Sequence record: BK067788.1
Strand: one strand, 5' to 3'
DNA length: 32,443 nt
Shown: one piece after another, positions 4,954 to 18,211 of the stretch
How positions within the stretch are numbered: position 1 is the first letter of the stretch
Layout: the number at the start of each line of letters is the position of its first letter
The notes under the pieces: model-generated
The model's database searches: none
What the model was told of the DNA's origin: nothing
What the model saw: the letters and a program-made list of their open reading frames with translations, nothing else
Position numbers and translations under genes: made by a program

Positions 4954-6876
4954 TCATAGTATTCTAGAACGTTTTGATTGTACGAATCTTCCAGTAGATT
5001 GTTTAGATTGTTCGGATTCTGATTTAGATATTGTTCTTTGAGAATAGCTTAGCTCACTTCTTTTATAGGTTCCAATTATACTAGCCTCAGGTACGTTACC
5101 AACAAATTCTCGTCTAAAGCCTCCCTTGCTTACTTTGCCAACTAGCCCCCCTCCTCCACCTACTCCTAAGACTCCTAGATCCGGTGGTCTTTTTTTATCT
5201 GTGGTTGTCTCTCCTGGTGGTGGAGTTTTGGTTGGTGGTGGTGTTGGTTTTGGTGGAGGTGGAGATGGATTACCTGGAATTTTTGTAACTGTCAATAAAT
5301 CAGTTATTCCAATTCCACCCTGATCCTGTTTTTGAGATTGTTTGGTTATAGTTATAGGAACTGGTGGAACTAGAGTTGGAAATGGTTTTGGTTTTTGTTC
5401 TGTTGTCTGTCTTGGTTTTAGAATTGGAACTGGTGGTACTGGTGTTTGTTTTTGTTCTTGCCTTGGCTTTCCAGGTTCTTTAATATATCTTAATCCAGTT
5501 CTTTCTATCAAAGATTGTTCTTGTTTTGCTTTTAATTTTTCTTCTGTCTTTCCAGTTTGTTCAGTCTTTGCTTTCTCCTGATCCTTTAGAAACTGTTCTT
5601 GTTTGGATAATTGTTTCTGTTCAAATTCTGGTTTTTGTTTTTGAACTGTTTTGGTAACTTGTTTTTCTCTTACTATTTGTTCTAATCCTTTTCCGGCTGA
5701 AACTGTCTTTTCTGTTGGAGTTGTAGGAGGTCTGCCAGTTCCTTCTAGGATTCCAGTACCACCCTTGCTACTTGATACTACTTTACCTGGTCCCACTCCT
5801 AACTTTACGGTTATCTCTGGTGTTGGTGTAACTTCTTTGCCTTGTCTTGCCATCTCAGGCGGTGGTGATTTCATCTTTTCATTTATCATTGACTGGATAT
5901 TCTTTTCAGTCCTGAACTTGTCGGTATATTTTGGAACATTAAGGCCAATATCTGAAGTGCCAACTTTGGCACCTGTCTCGGCTGCTTTTGGTGCTTCCTT
6001 TGCAAATGCCTTTGTAAAGAAACTGGATATTTCTTTCCCGGCTGATATTGCACCTTTTTCTAGAGAACCTATTGGTACAAATGCAAATACATCAGCTAGA
6101 CTTGTAGAAGGTACTTCTCCCCCTTGGGCTTTTTGTCCTGAAAATGGAACTTTAAGAAAACTAGATGCTTCACCTGTTTGTTTTTCAGATGTCGGTGTAA
6201 ATGTTTTGAATGTCTTTCCAAACAAAGTTGTTACTCCTGTTTCGCTTTGTGTTGTTTTTGTAGAAGGTACTACTTGGACAGTTGTAACTTTTTCAAGTGG
6301 TGGTAATCCTTGACTTGCCCTTAATGCGTTTGTCTTGTCTAGATTTGCCTGTGTTGCCCTTATTACTGGACTTGGACCTGATTTCAATACTGTTGTAGGT
6401 TGTGAAGTTTTTTCTGTTGTTTGTGGCATTACTGCGGTTCTCATTTGAGATATAGGAGTACCAGACACAGGAGTTCCGAATGATATTCTTCCTCCTCCTT
6501 GTGTCATTGGCAATACTGGTCTTTCCATCCTTTGACCTTGCGATGTAACAAAACTATTTGGCACTGGTGTTCCAAAGGAACCATAAGAAAATGATCCTGA
6601 TTTTATTGCAGCTTCTCTAGCTTGTGCGAATCTGTCATTACTTGAACCTACTCTTGAAACATGCTCTTCTACCATTCTTTGCTGTTCTATCTTTTGTGCT
6701 TCTGCTCTTACTGCTGCCTCTTCCGGTGTACCTGTCTTTATAGCACTAGGAGCTTGCTGTCTTTGTTCTTGTGTTGCCTGGTTTTCTCTTTGTGCAGCTA
6801 AGAGCCGTGCCTGTGCTGCCGCCTTTTCTGTTGGTGATGCGGGCTGAAATTGATTAGAACCTCCATAAGTTACCAT
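4954..6876 (-). CDS. 640-aa low-complexity, Pro/Thr/Gln/Lys-rich, probably disordered protein
   Basis: Long ORF; PPPPKPTPPPTKTPPPG, poly-Gly and EQK-rich segments; no TM or signal peptide seen. Confidence 0.75.
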   Translation of the reverse strand: MVTYGGSNQFQPASPTEKAAAQARLLAAQRENQATQEQRQQAPSAIKTGTPEEAAVRAEAQKIEQQRMVEEHVSRVGSSNDRFAQAREAAIKSGSFSYGSFGTPVPNSFVTSQGQRMERPVLPMTQGGGRISFGTPVSGTPISQMRTAVMPQTTEKTSQPTTVLKSGPSPVIRATQANLDKTNALRASQGLPPLEKVTTVQVVPSTKTTQSETGVTTLFGKTFKTFTPTSEKQTGEASSFLKVPFSGQKAQGGEVPSTSLADVFAFVPIGSLEKGAISAGKEISSFFTKAFAKEAPKAAETGAKVGTSDIGLNVPKYTDKFRTEKNIQSMINEKMKSPPPEMARQGKEVTPTPEITVKLGVGPGKVVSSSKGGTGILEGTGRPPTTPTEKTVSAGKGLEQIVREKQVTKTVQKQKPEFEQKQLSKQEQFLKDQEKAKTEQTGKTEEKLKAKQEQSLIERTGLRYIKEPGKPRQEQKQTPVPPVPILKPRQTTEQKPKPFPTLVPPVPITITKQSQKQDQGGIGITDLLTVTKIPGNPSPPPPKPTPPPTKTPPPGETTTDKKRPPDLGVLGVGGGGGLVGKVSKGGFRREFVGNVPEASIIGTYKRSELSYSQRTISKSESEQSKQSTGRFVQSKRSRIL

Positions 6877-12541: not shown

Positions 12542-12641
12542 GTACTCTAGGGTACGTTTGCGTACTATAAGAACTTGTTGTTGTCATGCGTACAGGCGTC
12601 AGACCGATATGTTAATAACGTACGTTCCCGTACACCATTCT
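12542..12641. promoter_or_regulatory. Divergent twin promoter with six GTAC boxes
   Basis: GTAC at 12542, 12552, 12562, 12590, 12620, 12630; TCTTATAG (minus, 12572..12565) and GTTAATAA (plus, 12611..12618), each 24-31 nt upstream of its ATG. Confidence 0.7.
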
Positions 12642-12827
12642 ATGGAAACGTCATTAGAAACAAAACCACTTTCAAATGAAGCAATTGGAGTATTATGTAG
12701 TGAATTATTTTTACAATTAGATTACATTCAAGAATCAGGAAACAAATATGGTAACATTGACCTTGCTAAACAATTAGTAAAAAGATTGAATCAATCCATA
12801 CCAGTTAAGGATAGAATTAGAAAATGA
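12642..12827 (+). CDS. First gene of the rightward operon, 61 aa (METSLETKPLSNEAIG...)
   Basis: Start reassigned from 12540 to ATG 12642 using promoter geometry. Confidence 0.6.
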   Translation: METSLETKPLSNEAIGVLCSELFLQLDYIQESGNKYGNIDLAKQLVKRLNQSIPVKDRIRK

Positions 12828-13060
12828 CTTCCTCAACATCCCCGTCAGACCGTTCACAAGAACCTTCAATGTTTAGAACTATTGATAAGATTGGATTTGT
12901 GTTAATGTCCATTGCAGCTGTAATATTATTTTATAATCTATATACTAATCAAGACTTACCAAGTTATTTAATAATTCCAATGACTATTCTAATATTCATT
13001 AGTTCTTATTTAGTTCTAAATTGGTTCATGCATACACCAAAGGAGATTGTCTCCCATTGA
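12824..13060 (+). CDS. Small two-TM membrane protein
   Basis: Two hydrophobic helices. Confidence 0.65.
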   Translation: MTSSTSPSDRSQEPSMFRTIDKIGFVLMSIAAVILFYNLYTNQDLPSYLIIPMTILIFISSYLVLNWFMHTPKEIVSH

Positions 13061-13194
13061 CCACTAATCCAAGAAGTAAATGTAAGATTAAGGAATGTAA
13101 TGGAACTAATCAGGTTAGAGGTTTTTGTGGTTTGAACCATGAGCAAGCATGGAAGGAAGGTAAACGAAAGGATGGACTTTACTATGACAACTAA
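13057..13194 (+). CDS. 45-aa CCCH Zn-finger micro-protein (MTTNPRSKCKIKECNGTNQVRGFCGLNH...)
   Basis: Manual translation; TTG start overlapping the upstream stop; C-x4-C...RGxC..H motif. Confidence 0.55.
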   Translation: MTTNPRSKCKIKECNGTNQVRGFCGLNHEQAWKEGKRKDGLYYDN

Positions 13195-13354
13195 ACCAAG
13201 ATTTAAAGAAACAATATCAGTTGAAGATGTCAGACAGAGGCATATTGACTTAGAAGTAGCACAAGAAGAACACTTCAAAGCAATTCAAGACATTAGGAAA
13301 GAAATGGGTGAACTATTTGACACCTATTGGGATTTGGTTCATCTTGACAACTAA
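13184..13354 (+). CDS. Small coiled-coil protein (MTTKPRFKETISVEDV...)
   Basis: Part of track ORF 13139..13354; later ATG preferred because of the upstream micro-ORF. Confidence 0.55.
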   Translation: MTTKPRFKETISVEDVRQRHIDLEVAQEEHFKAIQDIRKEMGELFDTYWDLVHLDN

Positions 13355-14231
13355 AATAGACGGTCTGGCACAATACCATATTCGTGAAGAACCAAACCAA
13401 ATAATTGAACGTGCATTAGATTTAGGAAAAACTAATCTATATTGTCTATTTTCAGGAGGGAAGGATTCTACTACTGCTAGTGATTTGGTAGCAACTCAAT
13501 ATCCTGAATATTACAAAGGAAACGTCTATACTATGACTGGAATGTCTCTAAGAGAATCAAGATGGTTTGTTACTCAACAATGCCATGAACAGAATAGACC
13601 TTTGTTTTTTACATGGGCTAAAAAAAACTACGTTGATTGGGTTTTAGAAAATGGATTTGGTGGGCAAGGTGTACATAATATTGTTATGTTCAAACTAAAG
13701 TTTCTTTCTTGGAGAATGTTTCTACGAGGTAAAGAAGATAAATCTGCATTTATCTCAGGAGTGAGAAAAAAGGAATCTGTCAGACGTAGTAACAGATTAG
13801 CATATAAGAATCCAATAGACTTTGATAATAAAACATGTATGATAAAACCAATTTTCTATAAGAATGGTCTTTGGTTATGGGATTACATAGCAAAACAAAA
13901 TCTAAAGGTTTCACCTGTAAATGATATTCTTGGAATATCAGGAGATTGTTTATGTGGATGCTTTGCAGAGAAACATGAGATTAAGTTAATTGAGAAATAT
14001 TATCCATATATGTTCAGTGCTATAAAATGGCTAGAAAAAGAGATTCAAAGACGTGGTAGTAAAACAGCATTAAAACATCCAACTTGGGGATCAGGTGCAT
14101 CATTAGAGGACATTGAAATGCAAACTCAGATTAAGAACTGGTTTGCAGAATGTGAAGAAGATGAAGGTTTGGAACCAAGCACATTATCTATCGAAGAATA
14201 TTGTACGGAATCTTGTTCGGTGACTGTCTAA
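13344..14231 (+). CDS. PAPS-reductase-family (adenine nucleotide alpha hydrolase / PP-loop, DndC/CysH-like) protein
   Basis: LFSGGKDS PP-loop, GVRKKESVRR, KPI...W..I, C-terminal DCLCGCF Cys cluster; likely TTG start at 13344. Confidence 0.85.
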   Translation: MTTKIDGLAQYHIREEPNQIIERALDLGKTNLYCLFSGGKDSTTASDLVATQYPEYYKGNVYTMTGMSLRESRWFVTQQCHEQNRPLFFTWAKKNYVDWVLENGFGGQGVHNIVMFKLKFLSWRMFLRGKEDKSAFISGVRKKESVRRSNRLAYKNPIDFDNKTCMIKPIFYKNGLWLWDYIAKQNLKVSPVNDILGISGDCLCGCFAEKHEIKLIEKYYPYMFSAIKWLEKEIQRRGSKTALKHPTWGSGASLEDIEMQTQIKNWFAECEEDEGLEPSTLSIEEYCTESCSVTV

Positions 14232-14395
14232 TGGAGAAAGAAATTAACCGACTTAGAAAATTAGAGGCGAGGCTTGATAAAGTAATAAAGAAAACTGATT
14301 CAGAGATTCATGGAATTGGAACACCTGAATGTTTAGATGATTTACTATACATAAAACATGGAAAGCATAAAATGTATTTAGGAGACTCTAAATGA
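14201..14395 (+). CDS. Small hypothetical protein (true start probably ATG at about 14231)
   Basis: ORF track. Confidence 0.5.
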   Translation: MYGILFGDCLMEKEINRLRKLEARLDKVIKKTDSEIHGIGTPECLDDLLYIKHGKHKMYLGDSK

Positions 14396-14520
14396 CTCCT
14401 ACTGGATGTCCCTCTTGTCATAAGTTATGTCTTGAACAAAAACAGGATAGGTGGTCAGGTATGATATATTTCAAATGTTCTAACTGTGGTAAACAATACA
14501 GGTTGGTAGAACTTCAATGA
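14392..14520 (+). CDS. 42-aa Zn-ribbon micro-protein (MTPTGCPSCHKL...FKCSNCGKQY...)
   Basis: Manual translation; CPxC...CxxCG; GGAGA upstream; ATGA coupling. Confidence 0.7.
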   Translation: MTPTGCPSCHKLCLEQKQDRWSGMIYFKCSNCGKQYRLVELQ

Positions 14521-14777
14521 TTATTATGCCCAAGATTAATTGGAAACAACTATTATGTTTTCATGACTATATACCTAAAGAAATGATAGGTATTATCAAA
14601 TGTGAAGATGAGGATAAAACACATTTCTACGCACATTGGATTTGTTCATATTGTAATAAATCAAAATGGTATATGTTTATGAAGAAGTGGGATAGCGATT
14701 ATCATAAACAATTACAGATATTTTCAGTTCTACCACATTCTAAACACTTCATAACAATCGGAGATGAGTCTCGATGA
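14517..14777 (+). CDS. Cys/His-containing hypothetical protein
   Basis: LCFHDY...ICSYC motif. Confidence 0.6.
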   Translation: MIIMPKINWKQLLCFHDYIPKEMIGIIKCEDEDKTHFYAHWICSYCNKSKWYMFMKKWDSDYHKQLQIFSVLPHSKHFITIGDESR

Positions 14778-15091
14778 CATCAACAACAAACCGTCATCTA
14801 ATAAGAACTAATCTTATTCTAGGTGGATTATACGGATGCTTCGGAGTATTAGGGTTATTTTTAGATTATACAATATACTATTTTGCTAACAAACCAAGTC
14901 CTTTTGGTCATACTCAAATGGATCCATTACTTCAGGGAATGACGTATTTCGTTATTGTTGTGAGTATTTTCATGTTTTGGTTTGGTTATCATGTCTATAA
15001 AACTGGATTAGCATCAGATAGAAGATTTTGGAATAGTATTGATCATATCGATTCTATGTTAACAAGGGGAGACTCTCGTCAACATGACTGA
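14774..15091 (+). CDS. Two-TM membrane protein
   Basis: Two hydrophobic helices. Confidence 0.65.
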   Translation: MTSTTNRHLIRTNLILGGLYGCFGVLGLFLDYTIYYFANKPSPFGHTQMDPLLQGMTYFVIVVSIFMFWFGYHVYKTGLASDRRFWNSIDHIDSMLTRGDSRQHD

Positions 15092-15239
15092 ATTAGGAAA
15101 AGATTTGATTAGTTTAGCAGGTAAGTTAGAATGGCAAATGAATCATGAAGATGGTCATAACATACCTTCAATCATAAAACAAATGCGAACAAAGTTAACT
15201 CAAATAGAAAAACTCGTCAACAAAGGAGAGGGAATGTAA

Positions 15240-15776
15240 TTGAGTCAAGTAGAATTAATTGACGACCTTCAATTATGGATTAGTCAACGAGAAGGTAAGA
15301 TACCAATAGAGGTTCTTTACCTTCCAAGGCCTGCAAGTGATTATCCTGGGTGTTATCCGCTACACTTTGAGAAGCACTTACCTCGATTACTTGAAACATA
15401 TGATTATGTTCACTTCTTTGGTGGTAAGGCCACCACTGGTTATCGGATAGATACAAACGCAGAAACTAATCCTGACTTGGTTGCAGACGTACAAGAAAGA
15501 TTACCATTCCCAGATAATTACTTTTCAGGCGGAAAAGCAGATCCACCATACAACGAACAATTTGCAAAGGACTTGTATAATTGCCCTTACCCTCAATGGT
15601 CTAAATGGACTCATGAGTTAGTTAGAATAGTAAAACCTGGTGGCCTTATTGCAATAATGAATAACTATCCAGTGCCAAGACTCAAAGGTTGTCAATGGGA
15701 AAAGATTGTAATCATCTTACTTAGAATAAAACAATTTCCTAAAGTCATTACTATACAGAGGAAAGAACATGAATAG
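15240..15776 (+). CDS. Small SAM-dependent amino (m6A/m4C) DNA methyltransferase-like protein
   Basis: HFFGG motif-I variant, RIDT, LVADV, catalytic DPPY, ELVRIVKPGG. Confidence 0.75.
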   Translation: MSQVELIDDLQLWISQREGKIPIEVLYLPRPASDYPGCYPLHFEKHLPRLLETYDYVHFFGGKATTGYRIDTNAETNPDLVADVQERLPFPDNYFSGGKADPPYNEQFAKDLYNCPYPQWSKWTHELVRIVKPGGLIAIMNNYPVPRLKGCQWEKIVIILLRIKQFPKVITIQRKEHE

Positions 15777-15899
15777 AAACATCTGCATACATGAACCAAC
15801 TGAAATAAGATTACGTGAGGGTTGGAATGATGATTATTACTGTCCAGCTTGTAAAGCCTACGTAGGTTACTTTTCTCGTTTAATATGGAGAAAGCCTCA

Positions 15900-16295
15900 A
15901 TGACAAAAGAATCGAAACGTAAACAAATAACAGTTTATGATTACAAGAATAGACCAACTAAACTAGATCTTCCTAAAGAATCATGGTGGTGGTCATGTAG
16001 AATAGGCAATGGTTTAGGTACTCTTCACTGTGTAATATCATGTTATAATACTTCAAATGTATTCTATATCACTCCAAGTAAACTAGCTAGAATCGCATAC
16101 TGTGATTCACATGCAGAATGTAGAATAATGAATACCATGCTAACAGGCCAATTAGAACAAGGCATATGGTGTATTGCCAATAACGGTAAATTAAAAGCAC
16201 ATTGGTTTTATCAGAGATATTTTCCTTATATGCAGAAAACTTATCCTAAACAGGCACGTAAATTAAAACAAAAGATAAAGGAGATTTTATCGTAA
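15900..16295 (+). CDS. Hypothetical protein (start likely ATG 15900)
   Basis: Track ORF 15885..16295; a 44-aa ORF at 15769..15903 couples to ATG 15900. Confidence 0.6.
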   Translation: MTKESKRKQITVYDYKNRPTKLDLPKESWWWSCRIGNGLGTLHCVISCYNTSNVFYITPSKLARIAYCDSHAECRIMNTMLTGQLEQGIWCIANNGKLKAHWFYQRYFPYMQKTYPKQARKLKQKIKEILS

Positions 16296-16630
16296 TGACC
16301 GAAGAATGTAAGGAGTGTTTTGAGTGGTTCAAGAATAAGAAGCAATATGAAGCACATTACAATCGTTTTCACAAAGCACCTACATGGAATCCAGATGGAA
16401 CCATTCAGCTTAATGCCAGTGATCAGATACGATTAATCTTAAAAGATATGGCTGGGTCTTGGGAGAAATACCTAGAGAGCTTCCCAAAGAAGAAACGAAT
16501 GACTTTAGACTATCGAGATTCAGTTAAACTAATGCAGTTCGAACTTGATAATAATTTAGAGTTTGTAGTATGTGGTAGTGAAGTAAAGGAATATCGTAAG
16601 TATGAAAGCCCAGGAGTTGCGTTGACTTAA
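16295..16630 (+). CDS. Protein with N-terminal C2H2 Zn finger
   Basis: CKECFEWFKNKKQYEAHYNRFH. Confidence 0.7.
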   Translation: MTEECKECFEWFKNKKQYEAHYNRFHKAPTWNPDGTIQLNASDQIRLILKDMAGSWEKYLESFPKKKRMTLDYRDSVKLMQFELDNNLEFVVCGSEVKEYRKYESPGVALT

Positions 16631-16935
16631 TGACACAACAAAAGAAACGTCTGTATTGTCTACTAGTAAATTATAAAACAATTCAAGGTGGTGAAATGTC
16701 TAGTAAACTAACAAGTAAATACTGTTGCTCTCGATTACAAAAAGAACTTGAGAAGGAACCATTCAAGAAGAAAGTAAGACAATCAATAGGTGGAATACAT
16801 TTAATGGATAAAGAAGGTGATAATAATTGGTTAAAGATCTGCCCTTACTGTAAGGCAAAAATAAAGAAACTTACTATAGTAATCGATTCAATACCATATA
16901 ATTTCATTCAACAAATGGAGATTGCTAACATTTGA
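16630..16935 (+). CDS. Zn-binding hypothetical protein (YCC...ICPYC)
   Basis: CC...CPxC motif. Confidence 0.6.
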   Translation: MTQQKKRLYCLLVNYKTIQGGEMSSKLTSKYCCSRLQKELEKEPFKKKVRQSIGGIHLMDKEGDNNWLKICPYCKAKIKKLTIVIDSIPYNFIQQMEIANI

Positions 16936-17132
16936 AAGACTCGCAGACCAAAGTAACGAAATGTAATAGATGTGAATTGGGATTTAATAGCATTAATGAA
17001 ATGGTAATTGTTAGACCGTTATATCCAATCTCTAAAGCATTTACAGAGTATTATCATGCTACTTGCTATAACTATAATCGATATAAGATATTACCAAAAA
17101 ACTATCCTTCAACATTAGGAAATAGTTGTTAA
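16932..17132 (+). CDS. Small Zn-finger-like protein (CNRC...YHATC)
   Basis: CxxC...HxxC. Confidence 0.55.
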   Translation: MKDSQTKVTKCNRCELGFNSINEMVIVRPLYPISKAFTEYYHATCYNYNRYKILPKNYPSTLGNSC

Positions 17133-17273
17133 TATGACTAGAGAGAAAGACGCTAAGGAAATTCTAAAGATTGTTGAGAAGTACAAAGACGGCTATCCAA
17201 CTTCAATGTATAACGCCATCCAAGAATATTATTACAAGAAGTCTCATAAACCTTCTAACAGGGATGTCGAGAA

Positions 17274-17957
17274 GTGAAAGTCCTCAATCTCTATTCTGGC
17301 ATAGGTGGCAATCGGAAGTTATGGAAGGATGTAGAAGTTACAGCAGTAGAAATTAATCCAGAAGTGGCCTCTATCTATCAAGATCTTTATCCACAAGACA
17401 AAGTAATCGTTGGAGATGCACACCAATATCTATTAGAACACTTCAAGGAGTTTGACTACATTTGGTCTAGTCCTTCATGCCAAAGCCATTCTAAGTTTAG
17501 AAAGAATGTAGCATGTCAAGTTAGGAATGATAATCCAGGTGGGCGATATGCAAAGCCAGTTTATCCAGACTTGCATTTATACGAAGAAGTAATATTCTTA
17601 CAGCATTACTTCAAAGGAAAGTATTGTGTCGAGAATGTTGTGGCCTATTATGAACCGTTAATCAAGCCTCAATTAATACAGAGGCATTGGTTCTGGGCTA
17701 ACTACCATATTGAAGATAAACACTTTGAACGTGATAATATTGCTAGAGGTTCACAGAAAGAACATGAGAATAGAATAGGAGTTGACTTGTCAAAGTACAA
17801 GGTTAGTTCAAGGAAGAAAGGTCAGAGTAGAAGTGAAGTATTAGAGAAGGACCAGATACTTCGTAATTGTGTAGATCCTTTATTGGGCTTGCATGTCTTT
17901 GAATCCTCGTTTACAAAACAAGTTATCTTATCAACGCTTGGGTTTGAAAGTCCATGA
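17274..17957 (+). CDS. Short C5-cytosine DNA methyltransferase-like protein
   Basis: LNLYSGIGG (motif I), AVEI (II), GDA (III), SSPSCQ (IV), VENV (VI), QRH (VIII). Confidence 0.8.
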   Translation: MKVLNLYSGIGGNRKLWKDVEVTAVEINPEVASIYQDLYPQDKVIVGDAHQYLLEHFKEFDYIWSSPSCQSHSKFRKNVACQVRNDNPGGRYAKPVYPDLHLYEEVIFLQHYFKGKYCVENVVAYYEPLIKPQLIQRHWFWANYHIEDKHFERDNIARGSQKEHENRIGVDLSKYKVSSRKKGQSRSEVLEKDQILRNCVDPLLGLHVFESSFTKQVILSTLGFESP

Positions 17958-18211
17958 GTGAATACCCACAGACTAGAAAACAGAAAATATCTTATTGGTG
18001 GTTTTGCAATAACGCATTAATCTTAATGATCATAACTTCGGTTCTTATGGTCTATGATGTGTTTCCTGTCTTAACATCAATATTTACATTGGATTTTATT
18101 TTCAATCCTAATCATATCGTTCATAACGTGTGGCATTGGTACATAACAATTCCTTTAGGTATTGCATGGATGTTTTTCTTTATGAGATGGTTAGGTCCAT
18201 CACCTTTCTAA
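17954..18211 (+). CDS. Two-TM membrane protein, last gene of the rightward operon
   Basis: Two hydrophobic helices. Confidence 0.65.
   Translation: MSEYPQTRKQKISYWWFCNNALILMIITSVLMVYDVFPVLTSIFTLDFIFNPNHIVHNVWHWYITIPLGIAWMFFFMRWLGPSPF

Follow-up and report, generated by a model that had tools for sequence, protein, structure and literature searches.

Three putative nucleic-acid-modification genes in one transcription unit of NTM1, a spindle-shaped virus of ammonia-oxidising archaea

What would a small archaeal virus do with three different enzymes of the DNA-modification type? The question is raised by the window analysed here, a stretch of DNA of 32,443 nucleotides, which forms a complete viral record, bounded by direct terminal repeats, and is identical to GenBank BK067788.1, the Nitrosopumilaceae spindle-shaped virus isolate NTM1, whose source is a rhizosphere metagenome. 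A first-pass annotation had placed a PP-loop protein resembling PAPS (3'-phosphoadenosine 5'-phosphosulfate) reductase and DndC, a DPPY amino-methyltransferase and a C5-cytosine methyltransferase in one early operon. GenBank names all 81 coding sequences (CDS) of NTM1 merely "ORFn", and the paper describing the virus group speaks of nothing more than an "MTase" in the type genome, and of no PAPS reductase (PMC10866085).

Features of the sequence, the families to which the genes belong and their linkage were observed directly; substrates, products and biological effect are inferred from them as follows. There is about an even chance that the three genes serve as accessory genes for DNA marking in a temperate spindle-shaped virus that infects ammonia-oxidising archaea, and that they share a transcript with small open reading frames (ORFs) of the zinc-finger and membrane type. 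ORF53 (C5-cytosine) and ORF46 (exocyclic-amino, DPPY), both solitary and minimal, would most likely methylate the viral genome against cutting by host restriction enzymes; comparison of relatives offers GGCC as a candidate site for ORF53 and a host-type AGCT or GATC for ORF46. ORF40 would most likely adenylate an oxygen of nucleic acid, probably of DNA, which sulfur or another nucleophile would then replace; such an activity would add a mark of a second type or assist the methyltransferases. The genes are as follows:

12609..18211, plus strand: transcription unit of 19 overlapping CDS (ORF36-ORF54, GenBank CDS table), which holds all three enzymes
13308..14231, plus strand: ORF40, a 307-aa PP-loop ATP pyrophosphatase of the PAPS-reductase fold (Pfam PF01507), of a mostly viral clade
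15240..15776, plus strand: ORF46, a 178-aa class-I methyltransferase with DPPY motif (phrog_3816, alignment A2)
17274..17957, plus strand: ORF53, a 227-aa mini C5-cytosine methyltransferase (PF00145, alignment A3)

All three genes were found where they had been placed, as confirmed by Pfam and PHROGs matches and by motif coordinates, and since each belongs to a large conserved family, they are real genes rather than chance ORFs. The single operon was also borne out, as a chain of 19 plus-strand CDS: spacing between successive CDS from ORF36 to ORF54 ranges from -47 to +1 nt, and since all overlap or lie no more than 1 nt apart, a single transcription unit is reasonable. ORF40, ORF46 and ORF53 are non-adjacent, with 5 and 6 small ORFs in between. 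The first reading had seen no clearly linked restriction enzyme and no further dnd or cys genes, and the scans agree: Pfam and PHROGs recognised no restriction enzyme in ten proteins between 13.3 and 20.4 kb, which took in most of the small ORFs between the three enzymes, and a Pfam scan of the ten longest other ORFs gave no dnd or cys family, only HNH, integrase and weak matches. No ssp gene was found in NTM1, and the whole virus lacks ParB and Sp-DndD; a ParB partner for ORF40, as in Burkholderia phages, was rejected on this ground. As solitary orphans, ORF46 and ORF53 fit an anti-restriction role. Several DNA data sets from rhizosphere and soil contain NTM1; their matching metagenome contigs show the presence of the virus and diverged copies only. 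None of the RNA runs contains the NTM1 stretch.

ORF40 matched Pfam PAPS_reduct (PF01507) with 29.1 bits at a cut-off of 22.5. GenBank lets it begin at a GTG at 13308 and the first-pass annotation at a TTG at 13344; the conserved region lies downstream of both. In a 21-sequence alignment of its family (A1), which has 18 invariant residues, the following motifs stand out:

13452..13469, plus strand: PP-loop SGGKDS, the ATP alpha-beta pyrophosphatase signature, nearly invariant
13758-13778, plus strand: GVRKKES, within a GVRxxESxxR block
13938..13964, plus strand: cysteine motif SGDCLCGCF, with Cys214 and Cys216 invariant
14202..14216, plus strand: C-terminal CTESC, with Cys299 and Cys303 invariant, second half of a putative four-cysteine metal or Fe-S site

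PP-loop enzymes carry out an ATP-dependent adenylation of an oxygen, followed by a substitution. The four invariant cysteines of ORF40 probably hold an Fe-S cluster or zinc, and they suggest sulfur or Fe-S chemistry. The SGDCLCGCF motif falls just past the end of the alignment of the family profile to APS (adenosine 5'-phosphosulfate) reductase 2goy; from this end-point it presumably sits where APS reductases have their Fe-S CxxC, which we take as a lead. An AlphaFold2 model of ORF40 had a pLDDT of 79, with the tail modelled at low confidence. Foldseek placed PAPS/APS reductases (yeast, E. coli, plant) at the top, with TilS and TtuA also among the matches; the best solved structures were 2oq2, 1sur and 2goy, with TM scores of about 0.45-0.50 by query. 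Neighbours in the Atlas were a viral PAPS_reduct cluster (TM 0.74) and archaeal or bacterial proteins which add PUA and 4Fe-4S ferredoxin domains, the archaeal PAPS_reduct proteins among them at TM 0.66-0.70. The structure searches gave a generic PP-loop/PAPS fold only and did not separate DndC-like from CysH-like proteins. The next gene, ORF41 (14231-14395), was considered as a split-off tail of ORF40 and as an equivalent of Sp-DndD; blastp showed no similarity to the tails of homologues, and PF20306 was not matched.

Pfam name, alpha/beta fold and top Foldseek matches would suit an auxiliary metabolic gene, i.e., a working PAPS/APS reductase (CysH) which boosts sulfur assimilation of the host, and viral homologues have usually been read in the literature as sulfur metabolism or as function-unresolved (bioRxiv 10.1101/2021.07.29.453957; PMC2920897). 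For ORF40 this appears very improbable. Its PP-loop is canonical, whereas true CysH has lost it and the equivalent positions read "sfGiqaav" in alignments; the catalytic tail ECG(L/I)H of CysH was not found at its C-terminus by a regex search, CTESC standing in a different context. The NCBIfam models for CysH and APS/PAPS reductases (TIGR00434, TIGR02057, TIGR02055, PRK02090) gave 15.6-17.8 bits against cut-offs of 154-254 (17.8 bits for the cysH model, with its cut-off of 165), and no thioredoxin or cys partner was found. Both its motifs and the curated models place ORF40 outside sulfate assimilation, in line with the first reading, and members of its clade are found together with DNA methyltransferases, a primase-helicase, ArdC-N and Sp-DndD (see below).

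The label "DndC-like", on the other hand, was too specific. ORF40 shares with DndC, SspD and BrxP, which act on DNA, the PAPS_reduct fold, an intact PP-loop (SGGKDS) and conserved cysteines (four, invariant), but scores in hidden Markov model (HMM) searches are weak (BrxP 22.1 and SspD 21.2 bits), and the DndC models (TIGR03183 and DndC of PADLOC) did not match ORF40 at E <= 0.1. These models weakly matched 8-14 of the 21 family members, with best E-values of 1.7e-5 and 4.2e-8; SspD, BrxP and archaeal relatives with PUA or Fer4 domains score equal or better. Across the family, the best NCBIfam matches were the archaeal "hypothetical" proteins PRK08557, PRK13795 and PRK08576, followed by CysH, SspD and BrxP, with DndC last, all far under the curated cut-offs. 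HMM scores therefore put the ORF40 clade outside CysH, DndC, SspD and BrxP. Partner genes differ as well: in contrast to DndC systems, NTM1 has no DndA/IscS, DndD/SspC or DndE/SspB among the ORFs scanned with Pfam, although a host IscS could serve, and in contrast to SspD and BrxP, no SspABC or BREX type 4 partner genes are present in the virus. With 779 positions, the BrxP profile also describes a far longer protein than ORF40.

By sequence, ORF40 is a member of an unnamed clade of the PAPS-reductase/PP-loop superfamily. The clade is at the same time an already known and named viral gene family, with homology at the family level to the viral "PAPS reductase-like domain proteins" (PHROG 424/2302), which are likewise stand-alone genes; tblastn against such proteins gave 26-30% identity across 62-79% of ORF40, and phrog_424 was matched with E 1.7e-11. 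Annotated homologues occur in Haloferax tailed virus 1 (HFTV1), Halorubrum tailed virus 29 (HRTV-29), Sulfolobus monocaudavirus SMV2, Acidianus tailed spindle virus (ATSV) and in phages of Rhodococcus, Mycobacterium and Arthrobacter. The subclade of ORF40 differs from these by SGDCxCG together with a C-terminal CxxxC (or CxxC), and ORF40 has no fusion to PUA or ParB. The PHROG match names ORF40 without explaining it; for none of the three families (ORF40, ORF46, ORF53) was a characterised member found in the literature.

More can be learned from the gene neighbourhood of the clade. The ORF40 profile retrieved 6241 cluster representatives (50% identity) at E <= 1e-3 and 500 at 1e-30, almost wholly viral or metagenomic; in 185,579 species genomes 2 loci were found, both in Thermoplasmata. 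Gene context was compared for 34 PAPS-like loci, which at 70% identity represent 20 lineages. In 5 of these lineages (11 loci), the PAPS-like gene has a DNA methyltransferase gene at a distance of 0-122 bp, and these neighbours belong to two classes, N6_N4 enzymes upstream and C5 enzymes downstream (loci L011, L012) or upstream (L042); in 3 further lineages, NTM1 included, a methyltransferase is encoded in the operon of the PAPS-like gene or no more than 3 kb away. Since methyltransferase neighbours were found by seeds, these counts are lower bounds. In the related virus NBD1, an operon on the minus strand (L032:14252-17369) consists of three overlapping genes: the PAPS-like ORF30, ORF29 for a D5-like primase-helicase (DUF5906 + D5_N), and ORF28 for a 128-aa methyltransferase of the PF05869 Dam family. 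The D5-like helicase of the relatives had no blastp match in NTM1. Clade members are also fused to an ArdC-N single-stranded-DNA-binding domain or to a small Sp-DndD domain (proteins P0356, P0358, P0385), and one clade member has a LAGLIDADG-type insertion, which is probably an intein. The links to methyltransferases, primase-helicase, ArdC-N and Sp-DndD point to DNA and not to sulfate assimilation, and we favour for ORF40 a putative ATP- and cysteine/Fe-S-dependent modification of nucleic acid.

The nucleic acid in question might also be RNA. ORF40 could, e.g., thiolate a base of tRNA or rRNA like TtuA, NcsA or ThiI-type enzymes and thereby retune translation; the best NCBIfam matches to the archaeal PRK08557, PRK13795 and PRK08576, the PUA and 4Fe-4S ferredoxin domains of the Atlas neighbours, and TtuA and TilS among the structural matches would agree with this. 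We regard it as unlikely, since PUA and other RNA-binding domains are missing from the viral clade, no tRNA gene is present in the window, and the recurring neighbours and fusions are directed at DNA (methyltransferases, D5-like helicase, ArdC-N, Sp-DndD).

It is somewhat less likely still that the three genes are unrelated passengers in one accessory chain, which form no joint layered system. The small ORFs that separate the enzymes would speak for this, as would the findings that neither mini methyltransferase family occurs at any other PAPS-like locus, that relatives possess a PAPS-like gene without either of them, and that methyltransferase copies 85-90% alike stand in other flanks in soil metagenomes, like mobile cassettes. 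Yet the PAPS-like clade adjoins DNA methyltransferases far above random placement, and this excess makes a functional or selective link between the enzyme types likely, even with varying partners.

Turning from ORF40 to the methyltransferases as candidate DNA-marking enzymes, ORF46 matched phrog_3816 "DNA methyltransferase" with E 2.6e-11, and its label "DNA methyltransferase" stems from PHROGs alone. Its catalytic motif is:

15540..15551, plus strand: DPPY (motif IV of amino-methyltransferases), with ADPPY invariant in A2

A motif I-like FFGGKA is found upstream of it, and there is no target-recognition domain. None of the Pfam DNA-methyltransferase families (N6_N4, D12, MT-A70, N6_Mtase, PF05869 Dam) matches ORF46; in its family, 9 of 21 members matched the generic Methyltransf_11, and no other Pfam match was consistent. 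Family members are 150-190 aa long, a few longer, with invariant LPRP...Y.G.YP, a motif I-like FF.G and ADPPY; no homologue was found in GenBank phage isolates. AlphaFold2 modelled ORF46 (pLDDT 82) as the core of a class-I methyltransferase and nothing more, with the tRNA m2G enzymes Trm11 (Z 13.4) and TrmN (Z 13.0) as nearest folds and many methyltransferases at Z 10-13. ORF46, unlike Trm11 and TrmN, has no THUMP RNA-binding domain. The closest known type by architecture is PF05869 Dam of phages T1 and HP1, which shares with ORF46 a length of about 130-190 aa, (D/N)PPY and the lack of a separate recognition domain; ORF46 differs in having no PF05869 match. True PF05869 members exist in relatives of NTM1. 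In a 90-kb phage, a member of the ORF46 family stands beside two N6_N4 methyltransferases, an Eco57I-like protein and a primase, and its neighbours also include dCTP and dCMP deaminases and ribonucleotide reductase. This context favours DNA as the substrate of the family, and we infer that ORF46 acts on DNA.

ORF53 matched Pfam DNA_methylase (PF00145) with 30.3 bits at a cut-off of 22. Its catalytic motif is:

17469..17492, plus strand: motif IV SPSCQSHS, with the catalytic Cys69, invariant in A3

In alignments with M.HhaI and DNMT2, Cys69 falls on their PCQ motif, and LYSGIGG, SPSCQSHS and RNCV are conserved in A3. With enzymes of the M.HhaI/M.HaeIII type ORF53 shares motifs I, IV, VI, VIII, a remnant resembling IX, and X; the family profile aligns to residues 13-136 of M.HhaI with E 2e-14. 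The difference from type II C5 enzymes is one of size and company: ORF53 has 227 aa against about 330 and no cognate endonuclease, and where the full-length enzyme of locus L011 has about 130 alignment columns for the target-recognition domain (between motifs VIII and IX), about 20-25 residues are left. Pfam and PDB alignments end at residue 78 with the single sequence and at about profile position 123 with the family profile. Motif VI is ambiguous; both HMMER (versus M.HhaI) and MAFFT (versus the full-length enzyme) put it at LYEEV, and in our own reading the invariant VENV...Y..P would then fit the LNAxxYGxPQ part of motif VIII.

The mini C5 enzymes are abundant, with at least 7997 homologues (90%-identity clusters), of which those listed are 195-240 aa long and 52-82% identical, and they were found on at least 577 IMG/VR contigs, with members in Vibrio, Gordonia and Flavobacterium phages. 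No partner gene, endonuclease included, is conserved across 79 IMG/VR loci; a separate recognition subunit or endonuclease was rejected, as the commonest real neighbours occur at no more than 25 of the 79 loci and are zinc ribbons or proteins of no assigned kind. The ORF46 and ORF53 families are large, uncharacterised and mostly viral, and both enzymes are hardly more than catalytic cores. Contigs from soil and rhizosphere were observed which are 85-90% alike to 15250-15730 (DPPY gene) and 17275-17660 (C5 gene) and continue into unrelated flanks; it seems that both genes move as cassettes between elements occurring together.

Whether there is anything to be protected from was judged from palindrome counts (Markov-corrected, observed/expected) in six related spindle viruses, given here with their methyltransferases:

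NBD1 (L032, BK067787.1): GGCC 0/39.8; no C5 methyltransferase; Dam
NMP1 (L127, BK067782.1): GGCC 0/49.6; no C5 methyltransferase; no methyltransferase found
NTT2 (L031, BK067783.1): GGCC 0/12.4; no C5 methyltransferase; D12 and Dam
NYM1: GGCC 13/53.4; no C5 methyltransferase; MT-A70
NBC1: GGCC 31/43.5; no C5 methyltransferase; Dam
NTM1 (the window): GGCC 26/36.7; C5 methyltransferase ORF53, sole carrier among the six; mini C5 and DPPY enzymes

NMP1 lacks CCGG (0/26.8) and GCGC (0/9.2) as well, and GCGC, CCGG and AGCT are depleted in some viruses of the group, which is clearly under restriction pressure. For ammonia-oxidising archaea, a table derived from REBASE contains methyltransferases for GGCC (m5C), AGCT (m4C), GATC (m6A) and GTAC (m5C, predicted) (PMC11033074). 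GGCC is a reasonable candidate target for ORF53, to be taken as a lead only. Contigs resembling mobile genetic elements which carry mini C5 enzymes of 58-75% identity keep GGCC (9/24, 22/31 and 15/27), which is consistent with this target and not decisive. Depletion of CpG was considered as a mark of CpG methylation and dismissed: NTM1 has an observed/expected ratio of 0.50, with TpG/CpA at 1.18, and the five relatives without a C5 enzyme have 0.41-0.53, so that the depletion, present whatever methyltransferases are carried, is a trait of the lineage and uninformative. TpG/CpA is in excess in the four relatives L031-L034 as well.

Instead of protection, the methyltransferases could serve regulation or replication of the virus, for example by methylating GTAC in the divergent promoter at 12542-12633, or the DPPY enzyme could act on RNA. 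This appears improbable. It is true that the six GTAC sites within 12542-12633 form the densest 100-nt cluster in the NTM1 genome, that the soil ammonia oxidiser Nitrososphaera viennensis has a predicted m5C methyltransferase for GTAC (PMC11033074), and that tRNA m2G methyltransferases have the closest folds to the DPPY enzyme. Genome-wide, however, GTAC is found 77 times against 101.5 expected, a ratio of 0.76 like those of GATC and ACGT and ordinary for this genome, and no evidence was obtained for the earlier suggestion of a methylation-sensitive GTAC operator. Moreover, five relatives possess the structural genes of NTM1 without ORF46 and ORF53, which makes a core regulatory role of the two enzymes unlikely, and methyltransferase content varies among the relatives as would be expected of accessory genes in an arms race.

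Several observations weigh against a DNA-marking role of the three genes and have to be set beside those which support it. The four cysteines of ORF40 could just bind zinc, and the C-terminal pair lies in the low-confidence part of the model. No methyltransferase is nearby in 12 of the 20 clade lineages, as far as the seed-based detection goes. PUA (RNA-binding) and ferredoxin domains on the nearest cellular relatives of ORF40 keep RNA as a live alternative, and RNA is also a possible substrate of ORF46, with tRNA m2G enzymes as nearest solved folds and no Pfam DNA-methyltransferase family matched. The distant ORF40 homologue of HFTV1 is a late gene, so that early timing of ORF40, as implied by the first-pass annotation, should not be assumed. 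Finally, GGCC is tolerated in NBC1, where no cytosine methyltransferase was detected, and NBD1 avoids GGCC completely although it has a PAPS-like gene; the connection of GGCC with ORF53 therefore rests on one carrier, and the PAPS-like gene gives no general protection at GGCC. The proposal of a layered anti-restriction protection or a sulfur- or adenylation-based modification stands in part: solitary orphan methyltransferases, restriction pressure and the DNA links of the clade agree with it, whereas the modification itself is a deduction. A bolder version of the DNA-marking role, rather doubtful at present, would be that enzymes of the ORF40 clade mark viral DNA in a sulfur- or adenylation-dependent way, with no need of Dnd/Ssp partners and often beside a methyltransferase, and that the mini methyltransferases truly do without target-recognition domains and read their sites (e.g., GGCC) with the core.

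Orphan anti-restriction methyltransferases and a "viral PAPS reductase" are of a known kind, here in three uncharacterised families. New are a PAPS-like clade which is not CysH and is repeatedly coupled to DNA methyltransferases, and two methyltransferases which are near-minimal cores, with GGCC as a concrete candidate target. Viral "PAPS reductase" genes are routinely scored as sulfur auxiliary metabolic genes in viromes; the motifs and linkage of the ORF40 clade argue for an activity directed at nucleic acid, which would alter the scoring in ecological surveys, and the clade could perhaps provide a DNA-modifying enzyme that is free of partners. The two mini methyltransferase families, abundant and without normal recognition domains, should be attractive for enzymology and as tools. 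The pattern of GGCC avoidance across the six viruses shows that restriction-modification shapes viruses of ammonia-oxidising archaea.

Among the small ORFs between the enzymes (14517-17132), several are Cys-rich or resemble zinc fingers, as is typical for small proteins of archaeal viruses; ORF49 has a weak C2H2 match, and CxxC pairs are present in ORF43, ORF50 and ORF51. Elsewhere in the window, the largest ORF of NTM1 (4954-6876, minus strand) encodes 640 aa and belongs to no Pfam family. On the strand opposite to it lies an ORF of 220 aa at 5651-6313. The region of the 640-aa ORF is the most GC-rich of the genome (0.40 versus 0.33).

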